The notes: generated from the letters alone by a model not told the origin. A stretch of DNA of 64,000 nucleotides from Macrostomum lignano (GCA_002269645.1 NIVC01003999.1:1836-65835); one strand, 5' to 3'; positions 6,528-63,993 are shown, counted from the first letter of the stretch. Program-made: numbers and translations.

Positions 6528-18922
<12,395 letters not shown>

Positions 18923-25088: not shown

Positions 25089-25953
25089 ATGTAGCTCGCA
25101 CACTGATATTGATGGCATGTACGCTTGTAGTACTTTTAACGACAGTCTATTATCGATTTATTCTAAGACTACATCTTATCTACCCCTCCCAAGCACACTG
25201 AGTCAGTCCCATTCTCGCTTAATGATGTCCTTCTGCCCCACCAGGCATTCACATGCGCCTGATCTTGTAAATAATTTGACCAACTTGCCACCCCAAACTT
25301 TATTCACCCCGGACATTTCAAAGCCCAATTTTGTTGTGCCTTGGATTATCCAGGGTAGGTTATCGCAAATCGACAATAATTTTGCTTTGCGATGTCCCCG
25401 GACAAATTAAGACCCCGGTGAACAGAAAGCCTAACACCGGATTTAACACCAAAACTCCCGACATGAGGCCGTCACCCTCGGCACGGCGATGGAGACGGTC
25501 GGACCGTGCTGACCACCTCCCGGCCCCCATGTCTCTGCCCACGGACCCTCCTCCGATCTCTTCCCTTCCCTTCCTACTCAAATATGCTTATCTCCGATCC
25601 GAAGAGGGTGCTGGCGCTGGCTAAACGCTGCCTGCGTCTAGAGCGCGTCTGGGCGCCATGCGACCGCAACAACAACAAAAATAGTTTATGTTTACATCCT
25701 TGTTTTGCCAGGTGCGCATGAAGTTCTAAAAATCTGCATATTCTAGAGCTAAAGCTACGCTTCTACGAGCTACATAAACCAACGTGGATAGATGACAAAC
25801 TTTAAAAAAGTAAGCATTCTTAGCTTCACTTTTAGATGCTATTTTTAGAACTCCATGGGTTTAGCCTTTTAGCGTCAAGTCGAAACCATAGACTATTTAC
25901 TAGCTCAAAACCTTTGATTCGCAGTCACAACATATATACAGGCTAACATTTTT

Positions 25954-27064
25954 GTCTATGGTACACCTTTCGTGCTCGGATCTGTCCATCCGTGCAGAAG
26001 GAGACTAAAAAATCTTATATAAGTTTCAAGATAGCAGACAGTAAACTAAGTCGAAGCCTATCTGGATAAATGCTTTTATTTTGCAGTCAGCGGCCGGTAA
26101 GTAGGCCTCGTATGATTTAATATGTCCAGTTTTGTTTTGTATTAGGCATAATTAACTAGCTAGGTTGTATTATAACACGTGGACTGGAGAATAAGTAAGC
26201 AGTGCGGCAATCCTCAAGAAAGGTTAATTAGCGTATTAAAAAAAACTCAAAATTTTCTCCAAAAAGGTCGTTAATAGGCTATCTTGAAACGCCCTGGGTA
26301 AATTTTAAAAACTTTAATATGATTTTCTAAATCTAGTACTTAGTTAATCGTAGTGATTGGATTTTATTCTGTTTAACTATTGCTTAACAATGTCTTTTTT
26401 GGCGCGAATCCGAATGGGATTTGTTTTAACGAATGAATTATTGAAGGTAGACGTACTAGACGCGAACTCTTCTGTAGCCAAGTGCCTTCTAACATATCGG
26501 TAATATTACAGTTTGTATTTTTTTATTATACAACCCCTAAGCTAAGGACGGGTATCCGTTGTGTTTCGTCAACAGAGTATAAGACTGTATTTGTTGGACA
26601 AATATTGATAAAATAAAAAATGATCAGGCTATTTTCTATATTAGTTTGAAATCAGGAATCATGGCGCGTTTTCTGGCATCACGTTCAATCATGCTGGGAC
26701 TTCTTGAAGTTTAAACTTCTAAAAGCTTTGGGCTCGGCGCTTTGGTTCTTTGTATTTGCCGTTCGTAATTCGGCTTACCGTCACTGTCTTTATGGCGCAA
26801 TTGCTGAAGATGTTAATGTAATTTTTCAACCCAGTAAGTACAACGGGGTGAAGATTGGCTTCCTTCTGCTGTTGTTTGCCACTGAACCGATCGAAGTACG
26901 CAAATATTTTCTGTAGATCACTATCTTCAACATGTTCCAAAACTTTTCACACTTCTGCATGCAGCATGAAATTCTTGCACTTTTACTCGAAGCATTCGAT
27001 TAGCGCGCTGGCGCTGCCGAATTCGGGTCCGTCGATGATGTTGATGTCTCGCTTTACGATGTAG
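25954..27064 (-). mobile_element. Degenerate Crypton-type tyrosine-recombinase relic (3' part)
   Basis: Minus strand reads YIVKRDINIIDGPEF...EHVEDSDLQKIFAYFDR (with stops), paralleling RYFMKLRGLDIIADPAF...IESDDLIKFSAYFDR of the 45-46 kb recombinase. GTCTATGG end motif at 25954. Confidence 0.6.
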
Positions 27065-27065
27065 T

Positions 27066-28340
27066 TTAGGCCGAGTTGTAGGCCGATGTGCGAATGTGAT
27101 GTAAGCCGAGCAATGTCGTCAAGTTCTGCATTAGCTCCGCGCGGAACTGCGAGCCCTGGTCACTCACCAGCGTCCATGTCGGGCAGTACTGCGAAATCCA
27201 GGAGTCTAGGAAAACGAGTGCGACTGACGTGGCTGTGATGTCGACGATTGGGGTAGCTTCAATCCAGTGCGAATAGGCGTCGACCATCGTGAGCAAGTAG
27301 CGGAGCCTTGGACTGACGTCGGCTGACTCTGGAGGCGGGAGCGGTCCAACGAGGTCCATATGGACAGTCGTGAAGCGTTGAGAGAGCGTCAGAAGCTGCT
27401 ACAGCGGGCGTTGGACGTGACGACCTGTCTTGCACTGCTGACACTTTCTGGATGTCGTTAGCCATGCCCGGCCAGAAGAAACGATAGATAACGAGTCGCT
27501 GAGTGGCCTTGCTGCCAGGTTGTGCAAAAGAGTCGAGAGAGTCGAACTGCAAAAGAGTGGAGAGAGTCGAACTGCAAAAGAGTGGAGAGAGTCGAACTGC
27601 AAAAGAGTGGAGAGAGTCGAACTGCAAAAGAGTGGAGAGAGTCGAACTGCAAAAGAGTGGAGAGAGTCGAACTGCAAAAGAGTGGAGAGAGTCGAACTGC
27701 AAAAGAGTGGAGAGAGTCGAACTGCAAAAGAGTGGAGAGAGTCGAACTGCAAAAGAGTGGAGAGAGTCGAACTGCAAAAGAGTGGAGAGAGTCGAACTGC
27801 AAAAGAGTGGAGAGAGTCGAACTGCAAAAGAGTGGAGAGAGTCGAACTGCAAAAGAGTGGAGAGAGTCGAACTGCAAAAGAGTGGAGAGAGTCGAACTGC
27901 AAAAGAGTGGAGAGAGTCGAACTGCAAAAGAGTGGAGAGAGTCGAACTGCAAAAGAGTGGAGAGAGTCGAACACCACGCGCCGTAGAGCCTTAGAGACGA
28001 CGGGTCATGGGTTTGTCTGCGCGATTTCGCAATGCAGCGGGCAGTCCTTGATGCTAAAGACAAAGTTATTGAAACGACCTGTCTGCCGATCGGCTTCAGG
28101 TGATCCCTTTGTGCCCGTGCGATGGCTGGCATGTCCACGCATTGCGGGAGGTCGGCTATCAGCCGAACTGCGGCTGATGTTTGATCTTGGGCAGGACGAA
28201 CTGGTCGTGATAGCTCGTCGGCTACGATGTTGTCCTTCCCGAGATGTGGGTGATGTCGCTCACAAACTCGGTGATGAAGTAACTGTCGTTGCGGCCGGTC
28301 AGAGAAGCGTTCCTTCCTATTTACCGGACGCTCCGGTGAT
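27066..28340 (-). mobile_element. Degenerate Ty3/Gypsy pol fragment (RNase H end, integrase zinc finger and core)
   Basis: ITEFVSDITHISG-KDNIVADELSRP; LRRVVFDSLHSFAQPGSKATQRLV..RFFWPGMANDI..CQQCK; MDLVGPLP...YLLTMVDAYSHWIEA...SDQGSQF...HIRTSAY (DDE core). Confidence 0.88.
27522..27971. repeat. 25-bp minisatellite (GTCGAACTGCAAAAGAGTGGAGAGA), about 18 copies, inside the integrase ORF
   Basis: GTCGA recurs every 25 nt from 27541 to 27966; the units are essentially identical. Confidence 0.97.
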
Positions 28341-31187: not shown

Positions 31188-31204
31188 TAATGAAAAAAGA
31201 GGAG

Positions 31205-31879: not shown

Positions 31880-32451
31880 CTTCTATATCTAAACACTTAC
31901 CCGCAAGCAAGACCGGAGGGCTCAAAGTCGCAAGCAAAGCGAAGCCTTTTTTATATAAGCCGAAATCCAAACCCCCACAGTTGAATCTCGCGACAAACAT
32001 GGGATTTGCCATAGACGAAAGTTCAATTCGTCTGAAACTTGTCCCTTGTCGAGAGAATATTACAAGCGCGCTCGTGCAACGCAAAATCGCCCTGCTTGTA
32101 GCTTGTCACTATTCAACTTTTAACTTGTCGATTCTATGCAACACCCCAGGGATTTGCTATTCCAGAAAAAATCATTTAATTAGCAATAACGAAAAAATAT
32201 ACTATAGCTGGTTGATACAAGCTTAGAGCTTTTTGGTTAATAGCGCTCTGAGGCGAGTATATTTCTTGTCTTATGATATACATGTAGCCCAGGGCTTACT
32301 AGCAGCGCACAGTGCTGTCTATGGTACTCGTAGATGGGGAAGGCAACGAACGGAAAAGTACAACGACAATGAATATCCACTCAGCAACATTTAAAACGCA
32401 ACACTCTAACTAGAAGAAAAATCAACTCACTCAGAAGAGTCAAAGCGCATA

Positions 32452-33200
32452 GTCTATGGTTCAAATCGAGCTTCAGAAACGCGTGTAGAAATTGCTAGGT
32501 TCAATAGTTTTGTATAAATAAGTAGCTAAGCTGAGTAGTAGAGGTGTAGAAATCGTTTATTATAAATGCCAGAATATGTAGTTTTAACTTTCAGACTTAA
32601 AGATTATTACAGACTCAGTAGAAATAGAAAAGTGGCGGCCGACAAGCAAGCTAGCACAATGCTGTGAGCGCGAGCCGAGTTCTGCGCTAATTCCGATCTA
32701 ACCAACAACAATAAGATAAATTGCTCATTACGTGCAACTGCTGAGCTGGCCAGGCCAACCCCCCAGCCAGCCCCAAAGTGCACCGCGCACTGCCAAACAG
32801 ACAAGGGCACATGCACTACGTGTTGAATCCCGTCTCATCAATATAGATCGAGTGACAATCTGGAGGCAAGTAACCAACCACTGCGCTAATTCTTGTCGAT
32901 GTGCCTCATTCTCTAGCGTGTTCCGAGCGACCGGTACGTCAGCATCCCTTCCTAAGCAATCAGCGTCATCAGGTGTTTGTCTAGAGATCTGCTTAGTGTG
33001 GCTTCGCTCTACTGCAGGCCAGCGAATGAATGCTCTAATGTGCATTCTCTGCTGTAACAAAACTCGCTCCACCTTCCTCTAGAATTTCATTGTCGACTGC
33101 GGCCATTTTGTGTTAAAAAACTCTAGAACTGAAGATTTATCTGTCTCTTGCCTGTATTATTTATTTGGTTGACGTAAAGCCAATTGTTTCGACCATAGAC
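32452..33200 (-). mobile_element. Putative internally deleted Crypton-family element bounded by GTCTATGG...CCATAGAC
   Basis: End motifs at 32452 (also 32317) and 33193 (also 33358). The internal minus ORF 32728-33072 (VARNTLENE...ELAQWL...IVTR) weakly resembles a Crypton N-terminus. Confidence 0.35.
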
Positions 33201-33727
33201 GATAAGAAAACTCCACAGGCCTTCCCATTGATTATTTTATTTCCTACTCGCACTTTTTTCCAGCCTGAAAAATGCTATATTGACATAAAATTCTTTATTT
33301 ATTACAGATGACTATATACCATTCATTTCGGCCAAAATACCAGCTTTAGCTTTTGGGCCATAGACAATAAAGCAGCTAAGACTGCATACAAAGTACTGGT
33401 TTGATAGGGAAAATACCTGTTTTTCACCTTTTAGAGGACCTTTTCGTTAACAAAAAAAATTAATCATACGATCTATTGTAAGACGTGGGTTAGCGTGAGC
33501 AACAAATGAGCGTGAGGAACTCCTCACTGGCATGCGCCCTGACTTATTTACGAGTATCTGTGTGGTTGGCACAACCCATAGATATCTGCATGATCCATGA
33601 TGCCACCATTGACCGAGCACACATGCAAAATCAAGTACACATACATTACAGTACGCTCGTATGATAAAATTCCAATTAAATGGTACAAAATGAAGAAAAT
33701 CGGTCCGACGGATTACTTTCAAACGTG

Positions 33728-33730
<3 letters not shown>

Positions 33731-33781
<51 letters not shown>

Positions 33782-34725: not shown

Positions 34726-35064
34726 TGTCTTGTTTACAAACCGAAACTTCATAAAACCGAAAGTTCACAAAGCAGAAAATTCTGCAAAGCCCTTTATAAG
34801 ACCGAAATTTCACAGCATAGAAAACTTAATATACGCTCGTAACAAGGTGGTAGGTGTTGTGTCTTTAGCCAACAAATAAAAGGCGGAGGTTTAGTGGAAA
34901 AAAAATGCAGCCGACTTTGGTCTGCTCGTAGCCTCAGCTCTGGCTATTTTCTTTTCTTATTCTTTTATTTCCCATGGGCTTTTTACCTCATATCCCTTCT
35001 GAGGGCCTGTAGAAAAGGGCCGTCAGCACCATAGACAGCTTCCCAGCTGCATATACAAGCGTAG

Positions 35065-39556: not shown

Positions 39557-40186
39557 TGAAATCTGGTAGCATACTTCACTGGTAGGCTATTTACGTCGCT
39601 CAGCTTGCGAACGGTCCAAGGACACAGTTTTGTACACACGGCAGCTCCCATTTCTACCCCCCACGCAGCGTCTTATAACATGCTCGCAGTTTTTTTTGCA
39701 TTGTTTCTGGGCTCCTGCAAAGAGTAATCACGATATACATGTAAAAAATTGGCAACCATTCGATGCCAGGACGCTCAATCTCAGGGTAAAATTTCAAAGC
39801 AAAGTGACTTTCCTGTCACCTGATGTTCAGGTAAACTCCACATGGATTTTGCCACTTTCTAGTAGGATTTTTCTGGACGGATTTTCGGTGTTCAAGTGGT
39901 TTTAGCCATAGACACAGCATGGGCTGCGCCCAAGCTTGAGGAGATGGCCGTCAATTCCACGTCACCGACATCTTGGTTTGGGCCCTAGACAACTTTCAGC
40001 CAAGTGGCAGTCGCCGAGAAAATCTCACGAGCCGAGAAACTTTTATTCATGTCTTTTCTAGAATATCTTGACTCGTAAGATTTTCTCCAACAGATTTTCT
40101 TGCCGGAAAAGAATTTCTTTAAAGAAATTCTTGGCTCGAAAGATAATCTTTAAAGATTTTCTCACGTTTTATTCATACGGCCCATT

Positions 40187-43493: not shown

Positions 43494-43656
43494 CTGGATC
43501 CTTCACTTCCGCGGGTACCCATTGTTGCTTGTCTTCGTACAACCAGACTTGTTGACCTGGTTTCAGTTGTTGTAGATCTTTTGCTCCTTGGGCGTAGCAA
43601 ATTGCATTTTTCTACTTGACGGCGTTCAAAGTTTCAAGATTTTTTCTTCATCTATA

Positions 43657-44348
43657 CTGTCCGTCAAAAGTTCCGGAACCCTTGCTACGATGTCTTCTAG
43701 CGGACATAATTTCAGTCCGTTTCAATTGTAACTTGATTCAAATGAAAGCTGCGGATCTCAGCTCCATGATGTGGTCAAGAAAAAGTTTATTCGAAGGAGC
43801 GCGTGTGAACAGGCCAGTGTTATGTACATAAAGGTTAGAGAAAAAAGTGAAGAAAAGACAAACAAGCAATTGTCTATGGTTGCTGAGTCTATGGAGCAAA
43901 CACACAGGGCTATTTACACACTTGCTGCCGGCACACAAAAACAGATGGCGTCCTGAATTTAAACGGAAGAGTAATTCTCAATAGCGAGTCGCGCCGCCCT
44001 GTGCACGAATTACAGCTTCGCAGCTTACAGCTTACAGTTTTGGCCATAGACTAATGTTAGCCAGGCTGAACACTGCGCGCAAACCGATTCCTTCCCATGT
44101 GTGTTTGCTCCATAGACTCAGCAACCATAGACAATTGCTTGTTTGTCTTTTCCTCACTTTTTTTCTCTAACCTTTATGTACATAACACTGGCCTGTTCAC
44201 ACGCGCTCCTTCGAATAAACTTTTTCTTGACCACATCATGGAGCTGAGATCCGCAGCTTTCATTTGAATCAAGTTACAATTGAAACGGACTGAAATTATG
44301 TCCGCTAGAAGACATCGTAGCAAGGGTTCCGGAACTTTTGACGGACAG
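43657..44348. mobile_element. Foldback MITE copy 1 (about 245-bp inverted arms, TA/TATA flanks)
   Basis: TATA|CTGTCCGTCAAAAGTTCCGG...CCGGAACTTTTGACGGACAG|TATA; near-perfect arms; second copy at 47837. Confidence 0.92.
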
Positions 44349-44566
44349 TATATGATCTATGTTCTCTTCAGTATTAGGTCTTCAACCGGTAATGCCAGCT
44401 TGTATCTCAGTTTTCTTCCCGCGAGGAGTTCAGATGGTGTTGGCAATTCGCGTTTGATAGGTGTATTCCGATAATGAAGCGAAGCTGTTTGGAAATCTTC
44501 AGTGTTGTTTGATTGAAGCGTGCAAGAATGCCATTCCCGCACGCCTTTGCGTGCCGGAATGCTTTT

Positions 44567-46297
44567 GTCTATGGAAAAATTTCACTTGTGGCTACACAAA
44601 AATTAGTGCAGGGATGCTGCGGCATTCCTGAACCCCATGGAACGAATGTATTTAAACATAGTGAAACGTAGAACAAGGATGAAATTGCAAAGTGACGATA
44701 AATTTAAAGAAGTAACGCTAAGGTCAGCATGAAGTCAATATCGGAGCGTAGTAGACTGCATCACATATCACTCAAATGTGAACTCCACCACGTTGCGTTC
44801 GCCGTTAGCTACGATCTTCATGCGCTTCGTTAAGGCAGTAGAAACCGTCACTTGACGTTGTTGTGATGACACGGTTATCAGTAGAAACCGGTGCCAAAGC
44901 AGTCTCACTGCCACCGAACTGCACGTTGTCGCTGTCAGTCAGGGCACGCGTCAGTTGCCCGCTCATGACTGCGATGATTGTCTCTCTCTTCTTTCCGCGA
45001 CGGATGTAGCGCTCCACGGATGTGGACGACTACGAAACAATATATGGTAATGATAGTATCAGTATGACATGACTGACATGAATCAAAATTAGAGCAGAAT
45101 AAGGACGAAAAATGCGCTGACCTTATGACCTGTGGCCTTCGCGATTGTTTCGATTGCAAAGCCGGATTCATGAAGAGTGGTTACGACCGTCGGACGTACG
45201 CAGTGGGCGGTTTACACCCTGGAGAGCTGGGCATTGGTAGAAATCTTTTTCAGCAGAGGCCCGAGAGTGTTGACGCCGACTGGTTGCTTTGTGTACCACA
45301 CACCGTCTGGACCGACTCGAGACTTTGGCCGCAGGAAAACGTCGCGTCCGTTCCAATCGGGAACGTCGTTGATCTAGGCTTTGTAGAGCAGAAAAGCACG
45401 AACCAGACATTTTGCAGCTACTGACGTCGCCACCATCATCGCTTCCTTGTTGTCGTCGCACTCCCTCATGTCGGTGGAACCATGCACATTCTTTGATGTA
45501 CCGCCCTGCAGCTTGATTTCAAACGACCCATTGGCCAGTTTTACCTGGCTGAACGACTGCATGGTGATTCCACGAAGCCACTCTCTGCGCCGATTGCCAA
45601 AGTAGTATAGCAGATTGAAGTACACCTCCTCCTGAAGTCGCGACGGTGTTGCCCTGTCGAAGTATGCACTAAACTTGATCAAGTCGTCAGATTCTATGGC
45701 CCCGTAGTGGCGGATCCGACCACCATTCTGCAAAAAAGCGTTGCAGACATACTTGATCATCAGGTTAGCCGCATGAAAAGCTGGATCCGCAATGATGTCG
45801 AGGCCACGCAGCTTCATGAAGTAGCGGAAAAGAGCGGCACGTATCCCAACGATAGTATTCGGGGAATAGAACGTCCCCATCCGCCTTCCGCTGGTGAGCG
45901 TAGAAATAGCGAACGTTCTTAGCCACATCCTCCACTGGAGCATCTTTGTAGTCTAAGCGGAGGTTGTTATCCGCCAATCAGGCCGTGAACCTCCGGACAA
46001 TCGCCTCTTCCTCCGCGACACTAGACTTGCATTGGTTATCTCGTTCCAGTTGCCGAGCCAGTTCCTCAAGCTCGTCCAGGTTGCACAGCGACTCGGCTCG
46101 ATAGCCAATAGCTGCTCCAGCTCCGCATCAGTACTGTTGGGCATGCTTAACGACAAAGCCAGCACTTCTTCGCTCTCTCTTTCCAGCTTGCTCTCCGTTG
46201 ACACAATTGCCAGCGCCTCCGTTGTACAACCACTTACAGAGCAGTAGTTGAAGTCAACTAGTGGAGGTGCTATGGTGGAGTTAATAATTGCAGCCAT
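44567..46297 (-). pseudogene. Crypton-type (DUF3504-like) tyrosine recombinase gene and its 3' end; intron 45121-45030; frameshifts and a premature TAA at 45214-45212
   Basis: RYFYAHQRKADG-FYSPNTIVGIRAALFRY...LQEEVYFNLLYYFGNRRREWLR...TSKN...WYTKQPVGVNTLG...TAHCVRPT...ATGHK|SSTSVERY carries the R-K-HxxR-H-Y catalytic set; CDS ends at 44805; GTCTATGG end motif at 44567. Confidence 0.85.
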
Positions 46298-47836
46298 GGC
46301 TCAGCTCTAAAGCTATGAAACTATTAATTAAGCTCCCTCCAAGGACAACTTGATAACTCAGGACCGGAAACGGGAAACCGGAAACGAGCCAATTCATGGC
46401 GAAAAAAGTATGAGGCTCTTTTAAAAGCATTGTTCTATGGCCCATCCGTATGCGCATGCTTTCAGTTGCCAATGTATACTCGTATCATATTTGACTTTTT
46501 GATAGGCAGTCAGAAGGCGGGTGCAGGGTCGGTTTTTTTAAATGTTGAATAGTTTTATTACATAAAGTAAACGTCGTGAAAATACACAATGGGAAGGCTG
46601 TACATGCAGCACATGTATAAGGAAACTCGAGAAAAATTTACGATTCTTTCTTCATCTGAACTACAAACAGAGAGGAAAATAACAGTCACAGAACGGGACA
46701 AGAGCTGACTATGATAAATAGTGAAGTGTTTGCTCCAGGTTCGCTCACTGTCCACTCAGCTTCAGTATTTTTCTATCGTGCACTTTATCCGGCGAAGGAG
46801 CGCTCTTTGCTCCTCGTTGAACATAACCCTTGAAGAAACAGTTGGTGAGGCGCACGCAGCATCCCAGAACATCTGCTTCAGGGAAGTAAAACTCGCCAAC
46901 GGCAGGAAACAATTTCCGCACTCGCAAAGCACATTACGGTGATCGGAGCGAAATGAAGCATCCAAAACAGAGGCAAGCAAAATTGAACAGCCACTTTGGC
47001 GGGTGCTTCAACTTTCCCCGGGAAATCATTTCAGTGAATTCACCGAGTGGGGTGTTTAAATTTTCGGCAGGATCTTCACCGGCAATTTTCTCCTTAAGCT
47101 TTATGTAGCCTGAAATGTTATTATTATGCTGTGCATTATCTGTGCAGAACTGCTAATCAGGTAAAGCAAAGCAGATTGGTGCATAGTGGCAATGTCGTAT
47201 CGTCGATTGTTTGGGTGCGTTGTGGCGAACTCGAGTAGCTTCAGGATGAATGTAACCGATGTGTCCGGTACAACTCCATCGTGGTTAAAGGCAATAGAAA
47301 GGTTCTTAGATAATGCCCTCACTTCACTTTCGACGTCCACTGTAGAGTTTTTACAACGATTTATGATAGCTTCAAGTTGCGACCAATACTTTAATGTTGG
47401 TTGAAATCCAAGCAGATCTCGAACCGCAACTGGTGAGTTTAACCGAAAGCATCGCATGGAATAGTTTGGTGAAACGAAAACTCGCAGAACCATTTCGGCA
47501 TTGGCGCTTAACCACTAGTGCACGGGGCTTCTATAGCCACACAGTCTCAATCAACGGATGGCACGCTAGGCGTGCCATGGCTTATCAAATTGTCAATGAG
47601 CAATTCCCCACTGTCAATGAGCACTGTGTCAGCAAACGGCTAATTACATAAACTATTAGCACAGACTGTCTAACTTGGCAGCTTCTTTTTCCATCAATCG
47701 AGTCATTTTACGCAGCCCTATCCTGGAGACTGTATATGGCCAATATCGACCCCTCTTGCTTTTCTTTTACAGTATTTTTTTTCAAAAACCAAGCTCCACT
47801 GATTGACTCTCTGGAGTAGAACTTTATGATTTTATA

Positions 47837-48423
47837 CTGTCCGTCAAAAGTTCCGGAACCCTTGCTACGATGTCTTCTAGCGGACATAATTTCAGTCCGT
47901 TTCAATTGTAACTTGATTCAAATGAAAGCTGCGGATCTCAGCTCCATGATGTGGTCAAGAAAAAGTTTATTCGAAGGAGCGCGTGTGAACAGGCCAGTGT
48001 TATGTACATAAAGGTTAGAGAAAAAAAGTGAGGAAAAGACAAACAAGCAATTGACTCTCCCATGAAAGCTGACTGCACAAGAATCCATAAGAGCCTGTTG
48101 ATTTCAACACAAGTTTTGGCCATAGACTAATGTTAGCCAGGCTGAACACTGCGCGCAAACCGATTCCTTCCCATGTGTGTTTGCTCCATAGACTCAGCAA
48201 CCATAGACAATTGCTTGTTTGTCTTTTCCTCACTTTTTTCTCTAACCTTTATGTACATAACACTGGCCTGTTCACACGCGCTCCTTCGAATAAACTTTTT
48301 CTTGACCACATCATGGAGCTGAGATCCGCAGCTTTCATTTGAATCAAGTTACAATTGAAACGGACTGAAATTATGTTCGCTAGAAGACATCGTAGCAAGG
48401 GTTCCGGAACTTTTGACGGACAG
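47837..48423. mobile_element. Foldback MITE copy 2 (same arms as 43657-44348, different core)
   Basis: TATA|CTGTCCG...CGGACAG|TATA; about 215-bp arms nearly identical to copy 1. Confidence 0.92.
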
Positions 48424-49958
48424 TATATAACGCATACATTTTTGTGTCCCTAGGCTACCTTATTACTGCTTTCAATCCCGGTTCTAATCAAATCCTTCGA
48501 GACAAGTATAAATGGCTAGCAACTTTCATGAGAATGCCGTTGCCTTTCTTGACGACTCACCGGCTTTGACCAGTGATAAGAGCGCCAGCGAGTACGCAAG
48601 CATTGATGGCGAGGTGGATGAAGAAGATGGCCAGAGTGACGTGGAAGGCTCTCAGGTAGAAGAAGCTTTGATTGAAAATGGATGGAATTTCGTTCAGGAG
48701 GGTGAAGACTCGCGTCTCCGGGATGCGCCAGAATTCCTCGGAGTGCCCGTTCTGAACCCGGATCTATTAGCTCAAACGCCGGATAACACAATGGCTCGGA
48801 TCGAATTCTTCCTCCAGCACTTTATTACCTCTGATCTGGTGTCTGCCATTCGATTTTGGACCAATGCTCGAGCTGATTTCGAGCTCCAAAACATTGCAAT
48901 TGAGACTGATGGACCTCTTCCCCCCTTACTATCATCTTGGAGACCATGCACCGACAACGAAGTGAGGAAATGTCTCGCCATCGTCCTGTAAATGGGTCTA
49001 GTGAAGAAGCCCGAATTGCACATGTATTGGTCGACTTGCGATTTCTACGGTGGTAAATATTTTCAAAAAGATCATTGCCTCGGAAGGGATGGGTTCATTC
49101 AGCTCTTGTCATTCCTCCGATTCTACGACTGCACCGCAGTAAATAATCACCAGGATTCCCTGAAGAAAATCAGGCCTTTTTTTAGACATTGCGCGTGGTA
49201 TGTGCCAAGCCAACTACTACCCGAATCAGGACGTTTCAGTAGATGAAGAGTTGGTCATGTACAAAGGCAGACTCATTTTCCGACAGTTCATGCCCAAAAA
49301 GCGCGCCAGGTTCGGCATAAAGGTCTACTGTCTCACAGAGGCTTCCACCGGATTTCTGTGGAACTTCCGTGTGCATGCTGTCAAGCAGGACAACGACAGG
49401 TTGGAAAATGAGTGAACTGCGGGAATTTATCTTTCAGTGAAAAGATTGTTGTCGAGCTAAGCAAGGACTTGCTGGGCTTGGGCTACCGGATCTATTGACA
49501 GCTGGTTCACGTCGCTTCGCCTAGCTCAGTTTCTGCTCGAACGTAATACCATGCTGACAGGAACCGTGAGAGTCGACCGAGGCATCCCCAACGAGCTAAA
49601 GGTGCTGGCACTGCAACCCATAAGTCACTCTCACGTGCGCCGAGGCAATGCTCTTGCCGTCAAGGTCGTTGACAGAAAGGCCAGTGGTCGCAAAACTGTC
49701 TACCTTTTGGACACCCACGGCGTTGCTGGAAGCACGGAAGTGAGGCGAGTAATTCGAGGTGGCGTAGTGGAGACAGTTTTGAAGCCCAACTCAGTACTGC
49801 AGTACAACAAGAGTATGGGAGGCGTCGATCGCCTTGACGCAGCGCTACAACCCTACAGTGCAGGAAGAAGGACGCACAGGTGGCACCAGAAGCTCGGGTT
49901 TCATATTTTGCTTCAGTTGTTGCGCAATGCTTGGATTTGTTACTGCCATTCTGGCAAC

Positions 49959-52900
49959 TGTTATGTCTTCTTCTCTAGCGGAAGACAGTGGGTCAAGATC
50001 AACAAGGTCAAGTTAAAAGTTGCACTCTTAGCCGAGCGTCTTATTTCATGTTCGTAACGTTCTTTTTATTTTCCAAGCTTGAAGCATCGCTTCTTTAGCT
50101 TATGGCTGGGTGTGTGTGCGACGGAGTCGTCTATGGCCACACCCAACATCTCCCCCCTTACAATGGCAAAGAAAATTTTTTTTAAGTTAATGCGGGGGAA
50201 CAAATTTTAGCACTTATAGTTAACTTTGGGTTTCTCCGAAAGTCGCATGCTTCTCCTGGGTTCAATAGTATCCTCGGGAACCTCAGGGATCGGAGGTGTA
50301 CGCAGTCCCTCTTTTTGTGGAGGCTCCTCTTCTTGTTTTCTCCCTGCCGGGTGCTCGCCAGCTTCAGGTGGCATTCTGTCGGTTTCTGCGGGCTCCTCGC
50401 CGGTTAGACTGTACGGATGTAGCTGATCCAAGTGAACCTTCCGATACTTTGAGTTCGGTTCATCTGTCTTGATCATGGCCATGCTCCTTCCGATAGGCAA
50501 AAGCAGTTTTGCAGTGATTGGCTTGTCTCTCTCATTTTTGTAGATAACTGGATCCTCCAGTCCAACTTGCCTCTTGGTAAACGGAACCCTGAGCTTGTGC
50601 CCCAGCAGCTGTTCCGCTGGTGACGATCCCGCTTTGTTGTCTGATGCGCGATAAAACAGCAAGAAGCGGTCAACAGACTCTTGACTGAAGCCATTTGCTT
50701 TGATGCTTTCTTTTAGCGTGCGTACGAAACGCTCTGCAACCCCATTACTTTGTGGGTGATAAGCTGCAATAGTTAGGTGCTCACAGTCAATTCCTGCCAA
50801 CCACTCCGTAAACTCCTTGCTGATAAAGCATGGTCCGTTATCTGACACAAGTGTCCTTGGAATTCCAAGCTGAGAAAATGTCCTTCTGACGCACTGAATG
50901 ACAGTTCGAGAAGTCATATCTTTGGTGACGTGGACTTCAGGATACCCGCTGTACGAATCTACCAGAACGAGCATGTAGTGGTTGTCGATCGGTCCTGCAA
51001 AGTCGATATGAACACGATCCCAAGGACCCGCAGCTTCAGGCCAACTGGAGCGAAAATTCCTATTTTGCGGTTTTGCGGTCCTACAGATCTGGCACAAACC
51101 GACTGTCCGTTCGATATCGCTGTCCATGGCTGGACACCAAAACTCCGCACGAGCCAAGGACTTGGTGCGGGACATTCCCAAATGAACTTCGTGCACTGCT
51201 GCAATCGCTTTCATGCGTAAGGATTTTGGAATAATGATCCTGTGGCCTCGAAGAATAACATCGTCCTGAACACAAAGTTCTTCTCGCACATTTTTGAAAG
51301 GTCGCAGCCTAGGGTGTTTGAAGCTTCCTGTCTTTATAGCGCTCTTCAGCAAGCGCATTTCTGAATTCCGCAAGCGCGCTTCGTTGCTAGCCTGATTTCT
51401 TCCAGAGACACTGTAGTTGAAACCGTGTGAATGTTACCAATCTCTAGCGTTTCACCGCTTCTTCCTTGCGGAACCAATCTTGAGAGCGCGTCAGATGCTA
51501 TAGCTTTAGATTTTCGATACTCGATCTCGTAATCGTACGCCGTGAAAAATATCGCCCATCTCTGCAGCCTTGCGGACACTCTCGATGGTAGCTCTTTGTC
51601 ACAGGCTAAGATGTAAACGAGAGGTCGATGGTCGGTTATTAGCTTAAATTTTCTACCACAGAGAAAACGATGACATCTTCTGACACCCCATATTATCGCG
51701 AGCGCTTCTCGCTCTATTTGCGAATAATTTCGCTCCGATGATGACAAAAGTTTGCTGATGTACAAGACAGGACGTCCTTGCTGATTCAGGACACCACCAA
51801 GGGCAATCTGCGAAGCGTCTACTTCGAGCTCAACCGGTAGCTTTGGGTCGTACGCATGCAAAGCAGCGTCTTCTGAAAGTGATTTCTGGATGTTTCTGAA
51901 CGCATCTTGTTCTTTTACGCTCCAACGAAACTCCACACCTTTGCGCTTCAGGTGCACCAACGGAGCCGATATTCCAGAAAGGTTTGGAATGAATCGCGAG
52001 CAGAACGTAATCAGTCCGAGGAAGGATTCTAACTCGGAAAGATTCTTCGGAGCTTCCATTTCTTTGATCGCCCGCACTTTCTCTCCATCAGGATAAATGC
52101 GACCGCTGTCCAGAATATGACCCAAAAACCGGACTCGAGATAAATTCCGTTGGCATTTCTGATCATTTACCTTTAGCCCTTCCGATGCTAGACGGTAAAG
52201 TACTTGTTCTTCGCGTCCTTTCAACTCTGACTCATCGCTTCCACCAATTAATATATCATCCATGTACGCTATTGTTCCGGGAATACCTTGGATCACTTGC
52301 GATATATACCGTTGGAAAATACTCGGAGCCGTTTTTATTCCAAACACAAGTTTATTGTACTTAAAATTTCCAAATGGTATCGACATCATGGTTAGCGGTT
52401 TAGATGCATCGTCCAGCTCTACTTGGTTGTACGCTTTCTCTAGATCGATGATACTGTACCGAAAGCATCCCGCCACTGTCGAGAACGCTTCCTTCGGGGT
52501 CGGTGTCGGGTAGCTATCCGGGACCAGCTGTGGATTAAGCGTACTCTTATAGTCCACACATAGCCTGATACTGCCGTTGGGCTTGCCGACTACCACGACT
52601 GGAGACGCCCATTCCGAGAATTTCACAGCTTCGATTATACCTTCATCAAGTAAGCGATCCAATTCCTTTTTTACTGCTTCACATTGAGCAAATGGTAACG
52701 GTCTTGCTTTTACATACTTTTTTGGTACTGCTCCATCTTTAAGTTCCAAATGAGCTTCCATTGTAGTTGCACTTGCTGCCAGAGATGCCATATCCATGGA
52801 GACTTCCCCATTATGTCCTGTGTCCAGCTGTACACAGAGAACATCTCGCCCCAGCAAGGCATAGCTCTTGCTGCCTTTCACTACCTCAAAGTCGATGCGC

Positions 52901-53150
52901 TGATATTTTCCATTCAGTTCTACCACAGCTTCGTATCGACCTAATACCGTGAACTTGTGATCACTTACATAGCCACCCAGTTGTGTATTTGAGTTCTTAA
53001 GAGCTGGTCGACCCAACTGTTTCCAGAGGGATCCTGACATTATGGACACACCCGCTCCAGTATCCAGCTCGCATGTCAGCGCGTATCTCTTTTGCCCTTC
53101 TAGTACGGACACTGTGATGGAGATAGGCTTTCGGTGATCCCGATCTGGGC
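49959..53150 (-). mobile_element. Ty3/Gypsy retrotransposon lacking its 5' LTR and gag; 3' LTR 50148-49959, PPT 50159-50149
   Basis: LTR with TGTT...AACA ends preceded by the polypurine tract AAGGGGGGAGA; pol order protease-RT-RNase H-integrase. Confidence 0.92.
50207..53112 (-). CDS. Gypsy pol (protease, RT, RNase H in 53112-51346; integrase in 51373-50207), one frameshift near 51370
   Basis: LDTGA, WASPVVVV.KPNGSIRLCVDYK, IDLEKAYNQV, YMDDILI, VDASQIALGGVL, ERNYSQIEREALA, TDHRPL; HEVHLGMSRTK, WDRVHIDFAGP, SDNGPCF, YHPQSNGVAERFV. Confidence 0.93.
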
Positions 53151-55254
53151 AAGAACTTCTGCATGAAGTTCTTAGACATCTTGGAGGCTACGATCCGCCT
53201 TCTGATGGAGCAGACGGGTCGGGGCAAGCGGCAGAACACATCGAAGCGTCGAGCTGCCTCGCTGCATACCCCATCCAAACTACCACCGACTGAGGCCAAT
53301 ATGAGACCGACTAAGCGGTGCAGAGTCTGCTATGGAAACGACTCGGCCAAGCGAACTGTCTACGTGTGTGATGCTTGCCCTGGAGAGCCTGGACTTTGCG
53401 CAGCTTCTTGCTTTCAGAGCTGGCACACTGCCGCGGGGAACTGATTGTACAGTCGACTTACTGTTACTCTGTAATCATCTGAATTCCTGACATCTAAATC
53501 GATCCCGTTCTGCCGAATTATCTTGTCAATTTTCTATTCTTACAAGTAAGAGAGTAAGCTACTTCTCGCTTGTTTTATGTTGAAGTGCTAGTTAAATTAT
53601 CTAAGCTTCTTTACTCCTTAGCTTGTTTCAACAGTTCGTATAAGTCCCAGTTCGTATAAGTCCGAGTCCGTCGAAGTCCCATGTGTCTCAAAATCCCAGT
53701 TATCCGAATCCCAGTACTATTGTAATAGTATTTTGCTAGACTGTTTACTTAGAATTTCGAATTCTTAAAATAAAAAAATTTCCTCTGACACTGAACAGGG
53801 AATAACAAACACAAAAACAAGTTTTTCGATCTATGATTGTGCCATCCGTGAGTTGTGGGGGTGTAGAAAACTGAGAATTCATAAAAAGAGATTGTGCCAT
53901 AGACATGTTAAGCAACAAATATTTTTTCTAATAATATGGTACGCCCAGCATGCCATCCGTGAAGAGAGGGTTAACGAGAAGATAAACACCTCTTGAACAA
54001 TGGTAACAATAAGCCGATGTGCTTTGATGACGTCTGAACAGTGAATGGATGCTCGGAATTCGGTTCACGATGGCAGCGTGTCACGCTCTCGAAATTCTAC
54101 TAGTTCATCTTGGAAAAGTCATCGTTCGGACAACAGCACGCCCCTTCCCTTAGCCTGTCGACTGGCACGCACTGCAATATCCAAGCACGCATCTTAGTGT
54201 TTCGTTTGATGGAGTGCAAATACGCTCGAATATTTGAATTAAAGCAGTAGAACTTCACAAACCTTGTGTTTGAACGAGGCAGGACTGCGGGACTCCGTCG
54301 AAAACTGACGGTGGAGCGGCCTTTCATTTCTTCCCTTTTTTTATCATTGGTGCATCTTGAGGCCAGTGCTTAGCACACACGCCCATGTAGTCTGTCACGG
54401 TCCAACAACAACAAAATTGTTAATGAATTCATGTGGCCAGGCCAAATCTGATTCACAAAGCACATTTGAAGAAATTCTTACCGTCAGTTGATTAGGCAGA
54501 GACAGTCGCCAAGCCTCTTGTTCAGTTGCATCTTTAGGAAACGAAAATACTGCAACATTCCGATCACGGTTACTATTGTAGTTTGCACAACAGAAAATGA
54601 CGCTGCATTTTCTCGGCATGATATTTAGTTTCAGCAAGAATAAAAGTTCTCTCTCTCAATTGCAAGTGCATGCGAAAAACTCCATTTTTAGCTCAGCTTT
54701 CTTCGCTTTCGTAGCTTTGGATGGGCCATAGAACAATGCTTTTAAACGAGCCTCATACTTGTTTCGCCATGAATTGGCTCGTTTCCGGTCCTTTGTTATC
54801 AAGTTGTCCTTGTGCTCTCCTTAATGCACAGTTTTGGCCATAGACAATCACCGAAGCGTGGGTTCACGTTTTAAGCCGATTGGCCTGACCAATTTTCTCC
54901 GTTTTTTCGCCAAAAGATGTCAAATGTACCCGGGATGGTACCTGCAATTTTATTAAGCTCTGGCTCATTGCTAAAGGGGTTTAATACTCGAACAACTGTA
55001 TTTTCCCTATCTAATTAGTGTATTTTTCTCGCAGTGAGAGCTCGAAAAATAAATAATACGTTTATGGCCATAGACTAAACTTCAACTTCCTGAGCTGATG
55101 CTACGAGCTATAAATAATTAAATAGGAGTATTAGACAGCATGCTTTTTTGCATAAGGGAGAGAAATCAGCCAGTGCACTTTAAAAGTATTGAAGTATTGC
55201 GCCACTATATAGTATATGCAAGGGAGAGAAAAATGCTCAGTGGCTGAGGCTGCG

Positions 55255-59793: not shown

Positions 59794-59994
<201 letters not shown>

Positions 59995-60581
59995 ACCTAA
60001 CAAAATATGATTGTTTCATATATGCGTTACTAGAATTAATTTAGCTAGAGAAACAAATTACTAGGCAGAGAATTATTACCACCGAAACAGAGCGCTTACG
60101 AATTTATTCAATCACTACACGCTATTCCGCTATACCCGTTACAAAATACACTCGAAGCAAATCTATAGTTCGCTGTTAGTTTGACAAGTCTATAAAAATA
60201 TTCATCAAACAAGAAGATAGATCTACTGTAACTCAAAGACGCGAGTTGAAATATGAAAATTGGATTTTTGTGTGTTTTTCAGTGAAGCCGTTTATTGAGT
60301 TCTATTGACGCAAACAGCGGTGGATGAGGGAGCGATGGAGGCGAGTTAAGAGTAGGCGACTGGCTGAGCACAGCTGGCTCACCTGCCGGCGCCAGCAGAT
60401 TTTTTTCAAATGATGGAGCTAAGGGGGGGGGGCTTCCAGCTGCCCTTGCATAGGCAACCGGTGATTGAGTCGCCCACTCGGAGCCGGCGTCCATCGAGTC
60501 CTGCTGTCTGGCGTAAACAGCCATTACGGTTGCTTTTGCCTGGGACACTCCCAACCGTAGGATGGGAATTTATAAGCTTCG

Positions 60582-60812
<231 letters not shown>

Positions 60813-61549
60813 ATTCAGATTCCTTCCTGTTTTTTCTTGACGGTGAGCTTCTTGTGTATGCAGATACAGACTCCTTTGCCCCATCTGGACTCAAGACCGG
60901 ACTAAACTAAACTCCAATTCGAGAAAAAATGATTTAAAAAAATTGTCGACAAATTTTCAGTCGCAGACTCGAAGCGCGAATCAAGTGGAAGCTTCAAAGC
61001 AAAAAAACAGAGCAATTTCGTCTGGCGCACCTGTGGCACAATTTATTTTTTGAGGGAGGAAAATTGGGACGTTTTTGTTTGTCTGTCTTATGGACCAATT
61101 CGGCTGCCCGCAGAGCGGCAGAGCCGTTTGAATATAATTGATCAATTATTTCGAAAATTTGCTCAGCATGGACCAGGTAGTTAACTGCTGCGAAACAAAG
61201 TCAAAGCAAAATTTCCTGCAGCAAATTTTCAAAACAGCAAAGCTTTACTTATAATTGTTTTTTCCAGCAATTTGCTAACAAATTGTTGGAAATCGCTCTT
61301 GAATGGGAAATTGTTTAAAGCAATTTTTGATGGGAAATCTTTTTTTATTGCCGCGACTTGCCTTCCCAGCTGTCTTGGTCGGCTGTCCGAGTGTCCGATC
61401 CAAGTTATTTTCTGGGCTTGTGTGTACTGCTGGGGCGCTTTCATATCTCAGAAATTTCATATTTCCGAATCGTATTTCCGAAATTTCATATCTCTGACGC
61501 TCCATATCTTTATATCATATCATATGAAGTCTGTTGCTAAGCTTGTCTG

Positions 61550-62490
61550 GGATGTGAAGTGTCGGAGATATGGATCGAGTGTTGGAGATGTGAAGTGTTG
61601 GAGATATGGAGTGTTGGAGATGTGAAGTGTCGGAGATATGGAGTGTTGGAGATGTGAAGTGTCGGAGATATGGAGTGTTGGAGATGTGAAGTGTTGAGAT
61701 GCGAAGTCGGAGATATGGAGTGTTGGAGATGTGAAGTGTCGGAGATGTGAAGTGTCGGAGATATGGAGTGTTGGAGATGCGAAGTCGGAGATATGGAGTG
61801 TTGGAGATGTGAAGTGTCGGAGATGTGAAGTCGGAGATATGGAGTGTTGGAGATGTGAAGTGTCGGAGATATGGAGTGTTGGAGATGTGAAGTGTCGGAG
61901 ATGTGAAGTGTCGGAGATATGAAGTGTCAAAGATATGAAGTGTCGGAGATATGAGATATCGGAGATATGAAGTGTCGGAGTTGGGAAGTGTTGGAGATGT
62001 GAAGTGTCGGAGATGTGAAGTGTCGGAGATATGAAGTGTCAAAGATATGAAGTGTCGGAGATATGAGATATCGGAGATATGAAGTGTCGGAGTTGGGAAG
62101 TGTTGGAGATGTGAAGTGTCGGAGATGTGAAGTGTCGGAGATATGGAGTGTTGGAGATGTAAAGTGTCGGAGATGTGAAGTCGGAGATATGGAGTGTTGG
62201 AGATGTGAAGTGTCTGAGATATGAAGTGTCAGAGATATGAAGTGTCGGAGATATGGAGTGTTGGAGATGTAAAGTGTCGGAGATGTGAAGTCGGAGATAT
62301 GGAGTGTTGGAGATATGAAGTGTCGGAGTTGGGAAGTGTTGGAGATGTGAAGTGTCGGATATATGAAGTGTCAGAGATATGAAGTGTCGGAGATATGGAG
62401 TGTTGGAGATATGAAGTGTCGGAGTTGGGAAGTGTTGGAGATGTGAAGTGTCGGAGATATGAAGTGTCGGAGATATGAAGTGTCGGAGAT
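61550..62490. repeat. 16-bp minisatellite (GGAGATGTGAAGTGTC / GGAGATATGGAGTGTT), often as 32-bp dimers
   Basis: Tandem periodicity with variant units. Confidence 0.92.
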
Positions 62491-62760
62491 ATGATTGCCG
62501 GATATGTGAAAGAAGCTGCTTTTCAAAGATATAAAAGTAGGGGAACTAATATGCAAGGATCCTATGTTCGCATAATCAAATACATCTGGATACGCTACAA
62601 CAATGCTGTGTCTTCGTTCAGTGAAGTCACTTATTGAAATGCCAACTTCGGGCGGGCGACTCGCATAGCAATTATGTAGTACACCTTTTCACGTTCAATT
62701 TTGATCAAAGTCCAGTTCTAAAAAAACTAGCGGAAATTCAATTCAGACTGAGGATAATTT

Positions 62761-63993
62761 TGTCTATGGCTAAACCTTACTTCGGTTAGAATGTTTTGAA
62801 CTGGGGTCAGACTGGGCCCCAGTCTAAATTGTCTGAATTGAATTGCTAGAAAATTTAGAATACTAATTATTATTTAAGTTGAACTGGAAATTGATACCAC
62901 ATTGAAACCACAGGAATTTAAAACATATAACTGCAATACTACGAAAACAAATGTCGGCAAAACTTAGTAGTTTTTTCAGTTTGGGTAGCATTGACGATGT
63001 CAGGTTGCATCCTAGGGCTTGAAATTGAACGCGCAGTTCGCAAAAGTTCCATTGAAGTTAAGCGAAAACGCTGAACGGTTCCCTACTACGTTGGTGGAAT
63101 CCACGTCGATCACCTGATTCATAAGGTGCTGACTGGACGAAACAGGTCCGAGCTTGGTGACAGGCACGACCACTTTTGGGTCTACGTTGACCAAAAAAGT
63201 AAACGAGTACGAAGTACACCTCGTGCAGAAGTAGTTGGAGTTGACCGATCAAAATAGCTAGATAGCTTTTCCAGGTCTTCCTTGCAAATTGCCTCAAAAT
63301 GTTCGATCCTTCCGCCAGCTTTAAGAAAAAGTCTGCCAACGGCTTTTAACGCCAAATTAGCTTTGAGTAAAAGCGATATCCTCAATGATATTCAGCCGGC
63401 GAACACGCAAAAAATAGCGACAGAGTCCGGCTCTAACACAGATCAGCGTAGTTGGTGCATAAAAGGTCTTGTCGAAGTGTAGCGTAAAAGTACTTTAACT
63501 TTTCAGCTAGATATTCAACGTCACAAGTATCGATGTCGCGACCTAGGCACGAGTCATCTCTCCATTGGTGCACGCTTGAAATATCTATGATCTAAACTTG
63601 GTGTTGAGCGGCCTTAGTGGAATTACGAGCCGTATTTTCATTCTAGTATTGTCTTAATTTTAACGATCGTGTATACCAAAGCTCATAGTCGTGATCTACG
63701 ACGCGGCATCGGTGAACGAATTGGCCTACTACACATGTCAGAAGGAGACGTGGTCGCGGCACCTCCTCGGCTGAGATTGGCGAGAGTACGAGTATTCAGC
63801 GCGAGTCAACCATGCTCAGCATGTTCGACGATCTGGCTCAATTAGATGTGAACGAACCCGAGGAGATTTTACTCGGTCAGGATCTGGATCAGGATCGAGA
63901 CCTGCTCAATGAGATGGATCTTATACAATTGGACGAAACGCTGAAAGTCGTATTAAATAAAGTTTTTTGTTCGGTGTGGTTTGGCCATAGACA
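62761..63993 (-). mobile_element. Deleted Crypton-type element with 16-bp inverted ends
   Basis: TGTCTATGGCTAAACC (62761-76) and GGTTTGGCCATAGACA (63978-93) match 15/16. Internal LFLKAGGRIEHFEAICKEDLEKLSSYFDRSTPT / LHEVYFVLVYFFGQRR is homologous to the 45-46 kb recombinase. Confidence 0.75.

Follow-up and report, generated by a model that had tools for sequence, protein, structure and literature searches.

The closest described relatives of the elements considered here are CryptonA elements, units of about 2 kb whose sole gene encodes a tyrosine recombinase with the residues R-K-H-R-H-Y and similarity to DUF3504, which lack a reverse transcriptase, terminal inverted repeats (TIRs) and long repeats, carry short terminal direct repeats, and occur in multiple copies with unrelated flanks and head-to-tail junctions (Goodwin 2003; PMC3212892). 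For animal Cryptons no terminal repeats had been found, and Platyhelminthes is not among the six animal host phyla listed for them (Kojima & Jurka 2011, PMC3212892); in most CryptonS elements, the terminal direct repeat is TATGG (PMC3212892). Host heat-shock elements, short words of another kind, occur in the long terminal repeats (LTRs) of the flatworm Macrostomum lignano (PMC12801592). Here we analyse 64,000 nucleotides of M. lignano DNA (GCA_002269645.1 NIVC01003999.1:1836-65835; the window, with positions counted from its first letter), in which Crypton copies lie among 25 exact copies of an 8-bp word, GTCTATGG, or CCATAGAC on the other strand. A first-pass annotation had taken this word to be the recombinase-binding end of a tyrosine-recombinase element family. 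Our comparison indicates instead that the flatworm Cryptons end elsewhere and that the word is a lineage-specific constrained 8-mer common to unrelated mobile elements, with a shared binding factor as the putative reason.

The 25 matches in the window compare with 1.36 +/- 1.04 expected from 100 dinucleotide-preserving shuffles, whose maximum was 4. All 24 positions listed in the first-pass annotation proved to be exact matches, and a 25th match, outside its range, was added at 7719. With tandem repeats masked, GTCTATGG is the top-ranking 8-mer of the window, ahead of poly-A words; a longer form, GTCTATGGCYAAAMC, is seen at many copies, and the 15-mer GTCTATGGCCAAAAC occurs 17 times with at most three mismatches, against 1.4 expected. 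The excess extends to other M. lignano DNA, the whole sample covering about 200 kb of some 760 Mb of genome: once Crypton bodies and tandem arrays are taken out, 88 kb hold 29 copies (1.5 expected), and the pooled 138 kb hold 51 (2.5 expected, 20.6-fold), a density of about 0.35 copies per kb in non-tandem DNA. Single loci carry as many as 29 (L001) or 9 (L002) copies, and L011, which was not picked for a Crypton, carries 5. When 8-mers are slid across the site in the pooled 138 kb, enrichment peaks exactly at GTCTATGG and falls off symmetrically, the neighbouring words reaching 9.4- and 8.0-fold and words from the flanks alone showing no enrichment. The consensus of 42 non-redundant non-Crypton sites is wTTT GTCTATGG CCAAAnC, random beyond -4 and +15, and in the 16-mer TTTGTCTATGGCCAAA derived from this 42-site matrix six of eight dyad positions pair. 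Sites are also clustered, with 21 neighbour pairs at most 300 bp apart (14 direct, 7 inverted) against 6.0 +/- 2.1 expected. That the motif is real, non-random and genome-wide is therefore close to certain. Full-text searches, and the papers on the genome, trans-splicing and LTRs of M. lignano, yielded no description of the word and nothing on Cryptons in Macrostomum.

The first-pass annotation had placed three tyrosine recombinases in the window, each beside the motif. The features that bear on this claim are the following (a caret marks an element junction).

44500..46447, minus strand: Crypton copy B, full-length and decayed, its gene running from 46297 to 44768
44500-44514: right terminus word of Crypton B, AATCAAACAACACTG
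44567..44574, plus strand: motif in Crypton B, 194 bp past the stop codon, with a further 67 bp to the right terminus
44519..44634: five copies of a Crypton-specific 12-mer (CATTCCTGCACG-like), an inverted pair included
46433..46440, minus strand: variant matching 7 of the 8 motif positions, sense CCATAGAA, directly before the CAATG^ junction on the 5′ side of Crypton B
54719-54789, plus strand: 97% duplicate of the Crypton B 5′ block, 7/8 variant included
54838-54845: exact motif (CCATAGAC on the plus strand) after this duplicate, within the 18-mer GTCTATGGCCAAAACTGT, which is also present at 44044
63000..63660, minus strand: Crypton fragment C, comprising only the N-terminal/core-binding part and box I (YFFGQRR)
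27069..27398, minus strand: region A, an rve (DDE) integrase core fragment (Pfam PF00665, 43.8 bits)

Two of the three recombinases (44.8-46.3 and 63.0-63.7 kb) are borne out. Crypton B scores 33.2 bits against Phage_integrase (Pfam, cut-off 27.1) and 26.3 bits against DUF3504, slightly below the cut-off of 29.7; box I (FGNRRREW), HCVR, TGHK and SVERY are still readable despite in-frame stops at 45955, 45376 and 45214 and an intron or frame change, and its closest matches are M. lignano DUF3504/tyrosine-recombinase proteins at 68% and 61% identity. Fragment C, interrupted by several stops and frameshifts and without the HxxR/Tyr region, shares 42-55% amino acid identity with Crypton B. The third region, A, is a DDE integrase: only the rve domain is found there, tblastx gives no similarity to Crypton B or C, and a tyrosine recombinase was rejected. 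Between 25.96 and 27.1 kb nothing resembles a tyrosine recombinase, and downstream of region A there is only decayed sequence. A 25-bp minisatellite at 27523-27972 (18 copies, 99% identical) lies within the frames of this decayed retroelement integrase region and yields long spurious open reading frames (ORFs) on both strands (27400-28400).

The true ends of the flatworm Cryptons could be read from eight insertions in two M. lignano families, family 1 at five independent loci (L001, L003=L004, L005, L006 and L007) and family 2 at three (L002, L012 and L013), drawn from a recombinase cluster of at least 13 paralogues. Family 1 copies, on different contigs and in different flanks, are >99% identical across about 2 kb and then diverge completely. 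Their right end reads ...CATTCCTGCACGCTGTGGTCAAACGACAATG^ and their left end ^TAATATTCCTGCACG..., and family 2 runs from ^TTAGGATTCTTGAACG... to ...AATCAAATAAGAATG^, so that the termini of all eight insertions take the form ...(C/G)AATG^ on the right and ^T(A/T)A... on the left. The left flank ends in nAnTG in eight of eight cases, matching the last bases of the element (caatg, caatg, gattg, cactg and gaatg in family 1; gattg, caatg and gaatg in family 2), the right flanks are unrelated, and neither a TIR nor a target-site duplication was found in these insertions. The mobile unit measures 1916-2074 bp and has one gene, with no reverse transcriptase or other enzyme, which sets it apart from DIRS, Ngaro and PAT elements. 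The proteins P0001 and P0002 pass the Phage_integrase cut-off (27.1), P0001 also scores 39.4 bits against PF12012 (DUF3504, cut-off 29.7), and the box I R, the K, HCVR, GHK and SVERY are invariant in the recombinase alignment.

As judged from these alignments, the Cryptons analysed here use a short nAnTG crossover, placed at their true ends, to integrate. At 5820-5900 of L003, and identically in L004, a head-to-tail junction reads ...GCCGACAATG^TCTTTTGACC, where the right end of a related copy (...CCATAGACATCCATTCCTGCACG...GCCGACAATG) is met directly by the left end ^TCTTTTGACCATAGAC. Such a junction is the expected product of a circle integrating into a resident copy and suggests circular excision; the junction of a family 1 circle is predicted to read ...CGACAATG^TAATATTCC.... 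The flatworm elements thus share the size, gene content and junction structure of CryptonA and differ from it (PMC3212892) in the nAnTG direct repeat and the flatworm host, to which they add family-specific 12-mer arrays and a genome-wide 8-mer at a fixed spacing of 5 bp. In more distant relatives from other samples GTCTATGG is not present. These have repeated ACAATGTA words; in the 3′ flank of the gene, L009, an ENA metagenome scaffold at 34% identity, has an 11-7-11 palindromic site of tyrosine-recombinase type, GACCACAATGT-ACAATAC-ACATTGCGGTC, and further GACCGCAATGT half-sites, and L010 has repeated ACATTGATGCCC words. CAATGT is common to L009, L010 and the M. lignano junction, and the words of the distant relatives fit a CAATG^TA crossover in this lineage.

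Relative to these ends, the motif sits inside the element. In Crypton B and in both M. lignano families, 66-67 bp separate the sense-strand CCATAGAC from the right end, further copies lie about 100 and about 145 bp upstream of the start codon, and the 2-3 copies per Crypton are all direct, CCATAGAC being on the sense strand each time. Because copy-to-copy homology runs 66-67 bp past the motif on the right, and past it on the left as well, the motif is not terminal. Each time it forms part of a composite, CCATAGAC-N5-[12-mer], which in Crypton B at 44567 reads CCATAGAC-AAAAG-CATTCCGGCACG on the sense strand. The 12-mer ends in TGCACG and varies by family (CATTCCTGCACG, CAATYCTGCACG, CATTCCGGCACG and, in the 44%-identical L008, CGTTGATGCACG) while the 8-mer does not; clusters of the 12-mer are confined to Crypton ends, and in the window it occurs only at 44519-44634, at none of the other 24 motif sites. 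The subterminal position of the motif is kept in four diverged families: Crypton B, the two from M. lignano, and the 44%-identical relative from another sample. In two of nine flanks a 7/8 variant (GGCCATAGA..) stands directly 5′ of a Crypton junction, where about 0.03-0.2 would be expected by chance, so that Crypton integration may be steered next to motif sites:

L002:9770-9790: 7/8 variant at a Crypton junction, GGCCATAGAttg^TTAGG
46428-46447 in the window, duplicated at 54719-54738: 7/8 variant at a Crypton junction, GGGCCATAGAACAATG^CTTTT

In family 2, an insertion of about 70 bp of G-rich sequence (…GCGGGGGTGCGGGGGCAGAGCCCCCGCTGGGGGCGTGGGGGCGAAG…) stands just upstream of the pre-gene motif in L012 (3720-3960) and L013 and is lacking in L002.

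These observations recast most of what the first-pass annotation had said of the motif. Its link to Cryptons holds in that Cryptons are present and carry the motif at a conserved subterminal position; it fails in that the element boundaries lie elsewhere, an outcome that the annotation itself had named as speaking against it. What it called an end motif lies 66-67 bp short of the right termini in eight insertions of two families, its inverted half-sites are direct copies on the two sides of the Crypton genes, and in place of Tn916-type heterologous spacers the junctions share nAnTG, with no sign of a 6-bp coupling sequence in the eight insertions. The inverted pair matching at 15 of 16 positions at 62761/63978 is present as described. 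As an element boundary it does not stand, since its left copy is internal to a miniature inverted-repeat transposable element (MITE) whose homology in M. lignano continues about 85 bp further left; likewise, an element C bounded by this pair was rejected, the left copy lying inside that shared MITE and C being only an N-terminal fragment. The motif was also rejected as the Crypton crossover itself, the two mappable families crossing over at nAnTG. In these Cryptons it is a conserved subterminal part, neither end nor crossover, and we are confident that it is neither the Crypton terminus nor specific to recombinase elements.

The second half of this conclusion rests on elements of other kinds that carry the motif, in the window unless a locus is named:

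8627-8836 and 12764-12980 of L011: LTR pair
50129..50160, minus strand: polypurine tract and 3′ LTR start of a Gypsy-type element, TAAGGGGGGAGA^TGTTGGGTGTGG followed by the motif CCATAGAC
50210..53187, minus strand: Gypsy-type pol, 70% identical to an M. lignano protein
53897..53904, minus strand: solo motif upstream of the Gypsy-type internal region
43653..44352: foldback MITE copy 1, with TA-flanked ends TACTGTCCGTCAAAAG... and motifs at 43872 (plus), 43887 (plus), 44044 (minus), 44110 (minus) and 44125 (minus)
47835..48425: foldback MITE copy 2, with motifs at 48120, 48186 and 48201 (all minus)
62677..62880: small foldback MITE, arms 62735-62748 and 62831-62844, with the motif at 62762-62769 between the arms
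34855..35039, minus strand: GCT^GTCTATGGTGCTGACGGCCC...AAAGACACAACA^, a short element of about 205 bp whose 5′ edge holds the motif (35029-35036)

In Gypsy-type LTRs the motif lies 13-28 bp inside the start of U3. Both LTRs of L011 carry it, 20 bp after the LTR start and downstream of the polypurine tract; in the window's Gypsy-type LTR it occupies LTR positions 13-20 (50129-50136), a layout shared with L011 though the LTRs no longer align. The pol region of the window element has the domain order Asp_protease_2 (weak), RVT_1, RT_RNaseH, Integrase_H2C2 and rve, and of the LTR pair of this element (50.1-53.2 kb) only the polypurine tract and 3′ LTR start are recognisable in the window, with no second copy. 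On the sense strand, copies ahead of the Crypton ORF and copies in U3 of the LTRs face the same way.

The two larger foldback MITEs hold eight copies of the motif, five in copy 1 and three in copy 2, as the first-pass annotation had cautioned; the ends lie about 220 bp from the motifs, and about 220 bp or further from each of those in copy 1. Both read TA^TACTGTCCG...CGGACAGTA^TA, as a Tc1/mariner- or Stowaway-like MITE with a TA duplication would, but with two copies the TA may equally extend the TIR. One segment is replaced between the two copies, and its breakpoints, CAATTG^TCTATGG and ^AGTTTTGGCCATAGAC, coincide with motif sites. The two copies have the same orientation and stand either side of Crypton B, at distances of 148 bp and about 1.4 kb; a segmental duplication may explain this, or the whole may be a composite. 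The small foldback MITE is 86% identical to L001:12438-12613. The 205-bp element has a sharp 3′ end and no TIR, and two more copies lie in L006; in one copy, homology is lost 3 bp before the motif. A 50-bp satellite of at least 15 units at L001:20854-21597, which falls within a Tudor/DEAD-box gene call, has the exact motif in every unit in the form TTTGGCCATAGACTAAA. A few short repeats of the window match M. lignano DNA at 86-98%. Since conservation of the motif is just as strong in Gypsy-type LTRs, TA-flanked MITEs, the 205-bp element, the satellite and at solo sites, it does not define a tyrosine-recombinase family, as had been proposed.

Three observations together point to constraint on the 8-mer and not to neutral decay. 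In 15 satellite units, the 8 motif columns have no substitution against 28 in the 42 other columns. One-mismatch variants are few: the window has 26 where about 37 are expected, hence no excess, and M. lignano has a slight one (55 against 43). And the motif is invariant in the noncoding flanks of Crypton families whose proteins are only 44-68% identical, and is kept in LTRs too diverged to align.

What the 8-mer does can be approached through readings in which recombination acts on it. The one put forward originally, that the motif is the recombinase-binding TIR of an autonomous and non-autonomous Crypton-like family integrating with heterologous spacers, most of the 24 copies being ends, draws on the presence of Cryptons with the motif always near both ends, on the 15/16 match of the 62762/63985 pair and on the existence of non-autonomous Cryptons in other animals (PMC3212892); set against termini 66-67 bp beyond the motif, direct copies within the element, a 62762 copy internal to a shared MITE, the absence of the Crypton 12-mer from the other 24 sites, foldback MITEs with TA-flanked DDE-type ends about 220 bp from their motifs, the occurrence of the motif in Gypsy-type LTRs and a satellite, and the rve identity of region A, it is highly improbable. 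A reading in which the 8-mer is the exact crossover core of att-like sites for some tyrosine recombinase, the intervening DNA being exchangeable cassettes and each integration adding a site, accounts for more: the exact 8 bp with degenerate, partly palindromic arms (TTTG/CAAA) and almost no one-mismatch variants, the clustering of sites (14 of 21 pairs direct), breakpoints on the edges of motifs in the two foldback copies and in the 205-bp element, ends of high-scoring segment pairs near motifs (9 against 1.9 expected), and the 7/8 variants abutting Crypton junctions in L002 and Crypton B. GTCTATGG even contains TATGG, and both are tied to Crypton end regions; in CryptonS, however, TATGG is terminal and the presumed crossover (PMC3212892), whereas the flatworm elements cross over at nAnTG, 66-67 bp beyond the motif, and the resemblance may be coincidental. 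We nevertheless regard this reading as unlikely. The only recombinase elements that can be mapped cross over at nAnTG, the arms, which for tyrosine recombinases are usually 11-13 bp long (PMC3212892), here span about 4 bp, no element with the motif bounding both sides was found, and the conserved position in diverged Gypsy-type LTRs argues for a function serving the element; the breakpoint enrichment, statistically positive, is not taken as proof because it comes from only three independent families. A little less likely again is the wider version, a genome-wide att-like core with which transposon fragments and satellites are moved, exchanged and multiplied as cassettes and to which Crypton integration is steered; if true, the core would amount to an integron-like recombination network in an animal genome.

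Other readings dispense with site-specific recombination. Subterminal transposase-binding repeats are familiar from Ac/Ds and En/Spm, and the motif could be such a repeat of one DDE-transposon/MITE superfamily, the remaining copies being decayed fragments or nested insertions; doublets 7-11 bp apart in the foldback MITE arms (window and L001) and clustering within 300 bp would suit it, but the motifs stand about 220 bp from the MITE ends or between the arms, not subterminally, the flanks past about 16 bp are unrelated in the 42 sites, the mutational halo that decayed fragments would have is missing, and homologous positions are conserved in Crypton and LTR families, all of which makes the proposal distinctly unlikely. 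The unrelated flanks at the 42 sites also led us to reject a single long repeat, now decayed, with the motif at its core. An RNA-level role is another reading: transposon transcripts would carry CCAUAGAC as a signal for targeting or processing, such as a small-RNA seed match, whose size equals the exact 8 nt; sense CCATAGAC is found in every Crypton copy, within the 3′ untranslated region and in L001 about 25 nt ahead of an AATAAA, and likewise in U3 of the LTRs, which falls in the 3′ portion of retroelement transcripts. The dyad-symmetric flank consensus points to DNA recognition instead, copies occur on both strands in foldbacks and clusters, and others lie upstream of the Crypton start codon, so that an RNA role is very unlikely. 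A known RNA gene was also rejected, the sole Rfam/ARAGORN match in the window being a tRNA-Glu gene at 4749. Chance, base composition, a single amplified repeat or an assembly artefact could appeal to the 8 of 25 copies that lie in two copies of one foldback element. With none of 100 shuffles exceeding 4 copies, the first rank of the 8-mer retained after tandem masking and removal of duplicated copies, 42 unrelated contexts, and the same enrichment in independent contigs of M. lignano as well as one contig from a different sample, we give this practically no weight.

The best overall explanation, which we hold with moderate confidence, is that the motif is a putative binding site of a common factor exploited by several transposon classes; that this is one shared trans-acting factor we put forward slightly more tentatively. 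The 8-mer would be bound by one sequence-specific factor, probably host-encoded and dimeric. In Cryptons it would serve as an accessory site next to the 12-mers, the co-evolving sites of the recombinase itself; in LTRs it would be an upstream element, and selection within the elements would keep it exact. The arrangement in Cryptons resembles, as an analogy only, that of lambda attP, where the crossover is flanked by arm-type Int sites and IHF sites: in both, about 200 bp hold two repeated kinds of site, one specific to the recombinase and one common elsewhere in the host genome. It differs in being a eukaryotic transposon with another orientation and spacing, and binding of the 8-mer is only proposed. 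Over-represented exact words are known as bacterial uptake sequences and Chi, which likewise have an exact core with a weaker flank consensus, occur on both strands at about one per few kb and show little mutational halo; here the word belongs to an animal genome and is associated with transposons, and we know of no comparable mechanism for a word in an animal genome. Heat-shock elements in M. lignano LTRs (PMC12801592) offer a parallel within the same organism, a short factor-binding word conserved in U3, from which the 8-mer differs in being invariant, in occurring also in DNA transposons, MITEs and satellites, and in its roughly 20-fold over-representation genome-wide.

Several points weigh against a shared binding factor. 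An invariant 8-mer without tolerated variants is unusual for a transcription-factor site. Homology breakpoints at motif edges in two to three repeat families, and the 7/8 variants at two Crypton junctions, fit recombination better. For about 15 of the 25 copies in the window, neither an element nor a local inverted repeat could be recognised, most of the M. lignano loci compared were picked through their Crypton gene, and a downstream TATA box shows no general association (9 against 2 across 53 sites). A promoter element upstream of TATA was rejected accordingly: TATAAAG lies 45-75 bp downstream of the motif in Crypton and LTR, with no general association. Consensuses of RFX, NFI, YY1 and primer-binding sites, compared by eye, gave no convincing match, and the enrichment is centred on the 8-mer and not on TTGGC/GCCAA-type half-sites.

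The remaining motif sites and other features of the window are the following.

7719..7726, minus strand: solo GTCTATGG in GC-rich, ORF-like DNA; about one window copy is expected by chance
25886..25893, minus strand: motif, in an outward-facing pair with the copy at 25954, 60 bp apart
25954..25961, plus strand: motif, about 1.1 kb 3′ of the rve fragment
32009..33365: cluster of five motifs at 32009 (minus), 32317 (plus), 32452 (plus), 33193 (minus) and 33358 (minus), in unrelated contexts and with no local inverted repeats
39906..39913, minus strand: motif, GTCTATGGCTAAAAC, about 320 bp from a Harbinger-type transposon remnant
39976-39990: degenerate motif copy, GTCTAGGGCCCAAAC
55068..55075, minus strand: solo motif, 165 bp before a minisatellite of 18-bp period
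63985..63992, minus strand: motif, GTCTATGGCCAAACC, at the window edge, opposite in orientation to the upstream copies of intact Cryptons
37219-38381, plus strand: Harbinger-type transposase (DDE_Tnp_4), two exons or fragments
48512-50054, plus strand: piggyBac-type transposase fragment (DDE_Tnp_1_7)
4749-4821: tRNA-Glu(CTC) gene, between minisatellite arrays
1-18500, 24144-24491, 27523-27972, 55255-56399 and 59794-62494: tandem-array regions
20483, 28796, 32279, 38490 and 39736: TACATGTA, also in all M. lignano loci
33549, 46476, 59768 and 63787: ATACTCGTA, also in all M. lignano loci

Only the foldback copies among the window's motif sites lie in inverted repeats. The sense context of the copy at 25954, GAAAGG^TGTA followed by CCATAGAC, is compatible with an LTR start. 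The end of the piggyBac ORF abuts the Gypsy-type 3′ LTR start, and no homologues were found for an ORF at 58962-59606. Tandem arrays of at least 150 bp number 18 and occupy 12,957 bp, 20% of the window, with periods of 4-190 bp, mostly 16-35 bp; the first 18 kb consist almost wholly of different minisatellites in succession. Two further dispersed words are in strong excess in the masked 138 kb pool: TACATGTA, a palindrome (31 copies against 1.6 expected, 19.6-fold), and TACTCGTA (26 against 2.1, 12.5-fold), neither co-occurring with GTCTATGG. The former has the TA-CA-TG-TA form that we take to be that of a Tc1/mariner excision footprint. As both are over-represented independently, GTCTATGG is the strongest among several such words in the genome.

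For animal Cryptons, the eight insertions define ends at base level, together with an nAnTG crossover and 12-mer arrays. For M. lignano, a transgenic flatworm model in which repeats account for over half the genome, about one copy of the 8-mer per 3 kb extrapolates to some 250,000-300,000 genome copies. Its occurrence in DNA transposons, LTR retrotransposons, MITEs and satellites points to one factor linking diverse elements with their host, and such a shared factor would be relevant to the silencing or expression of transgenes.

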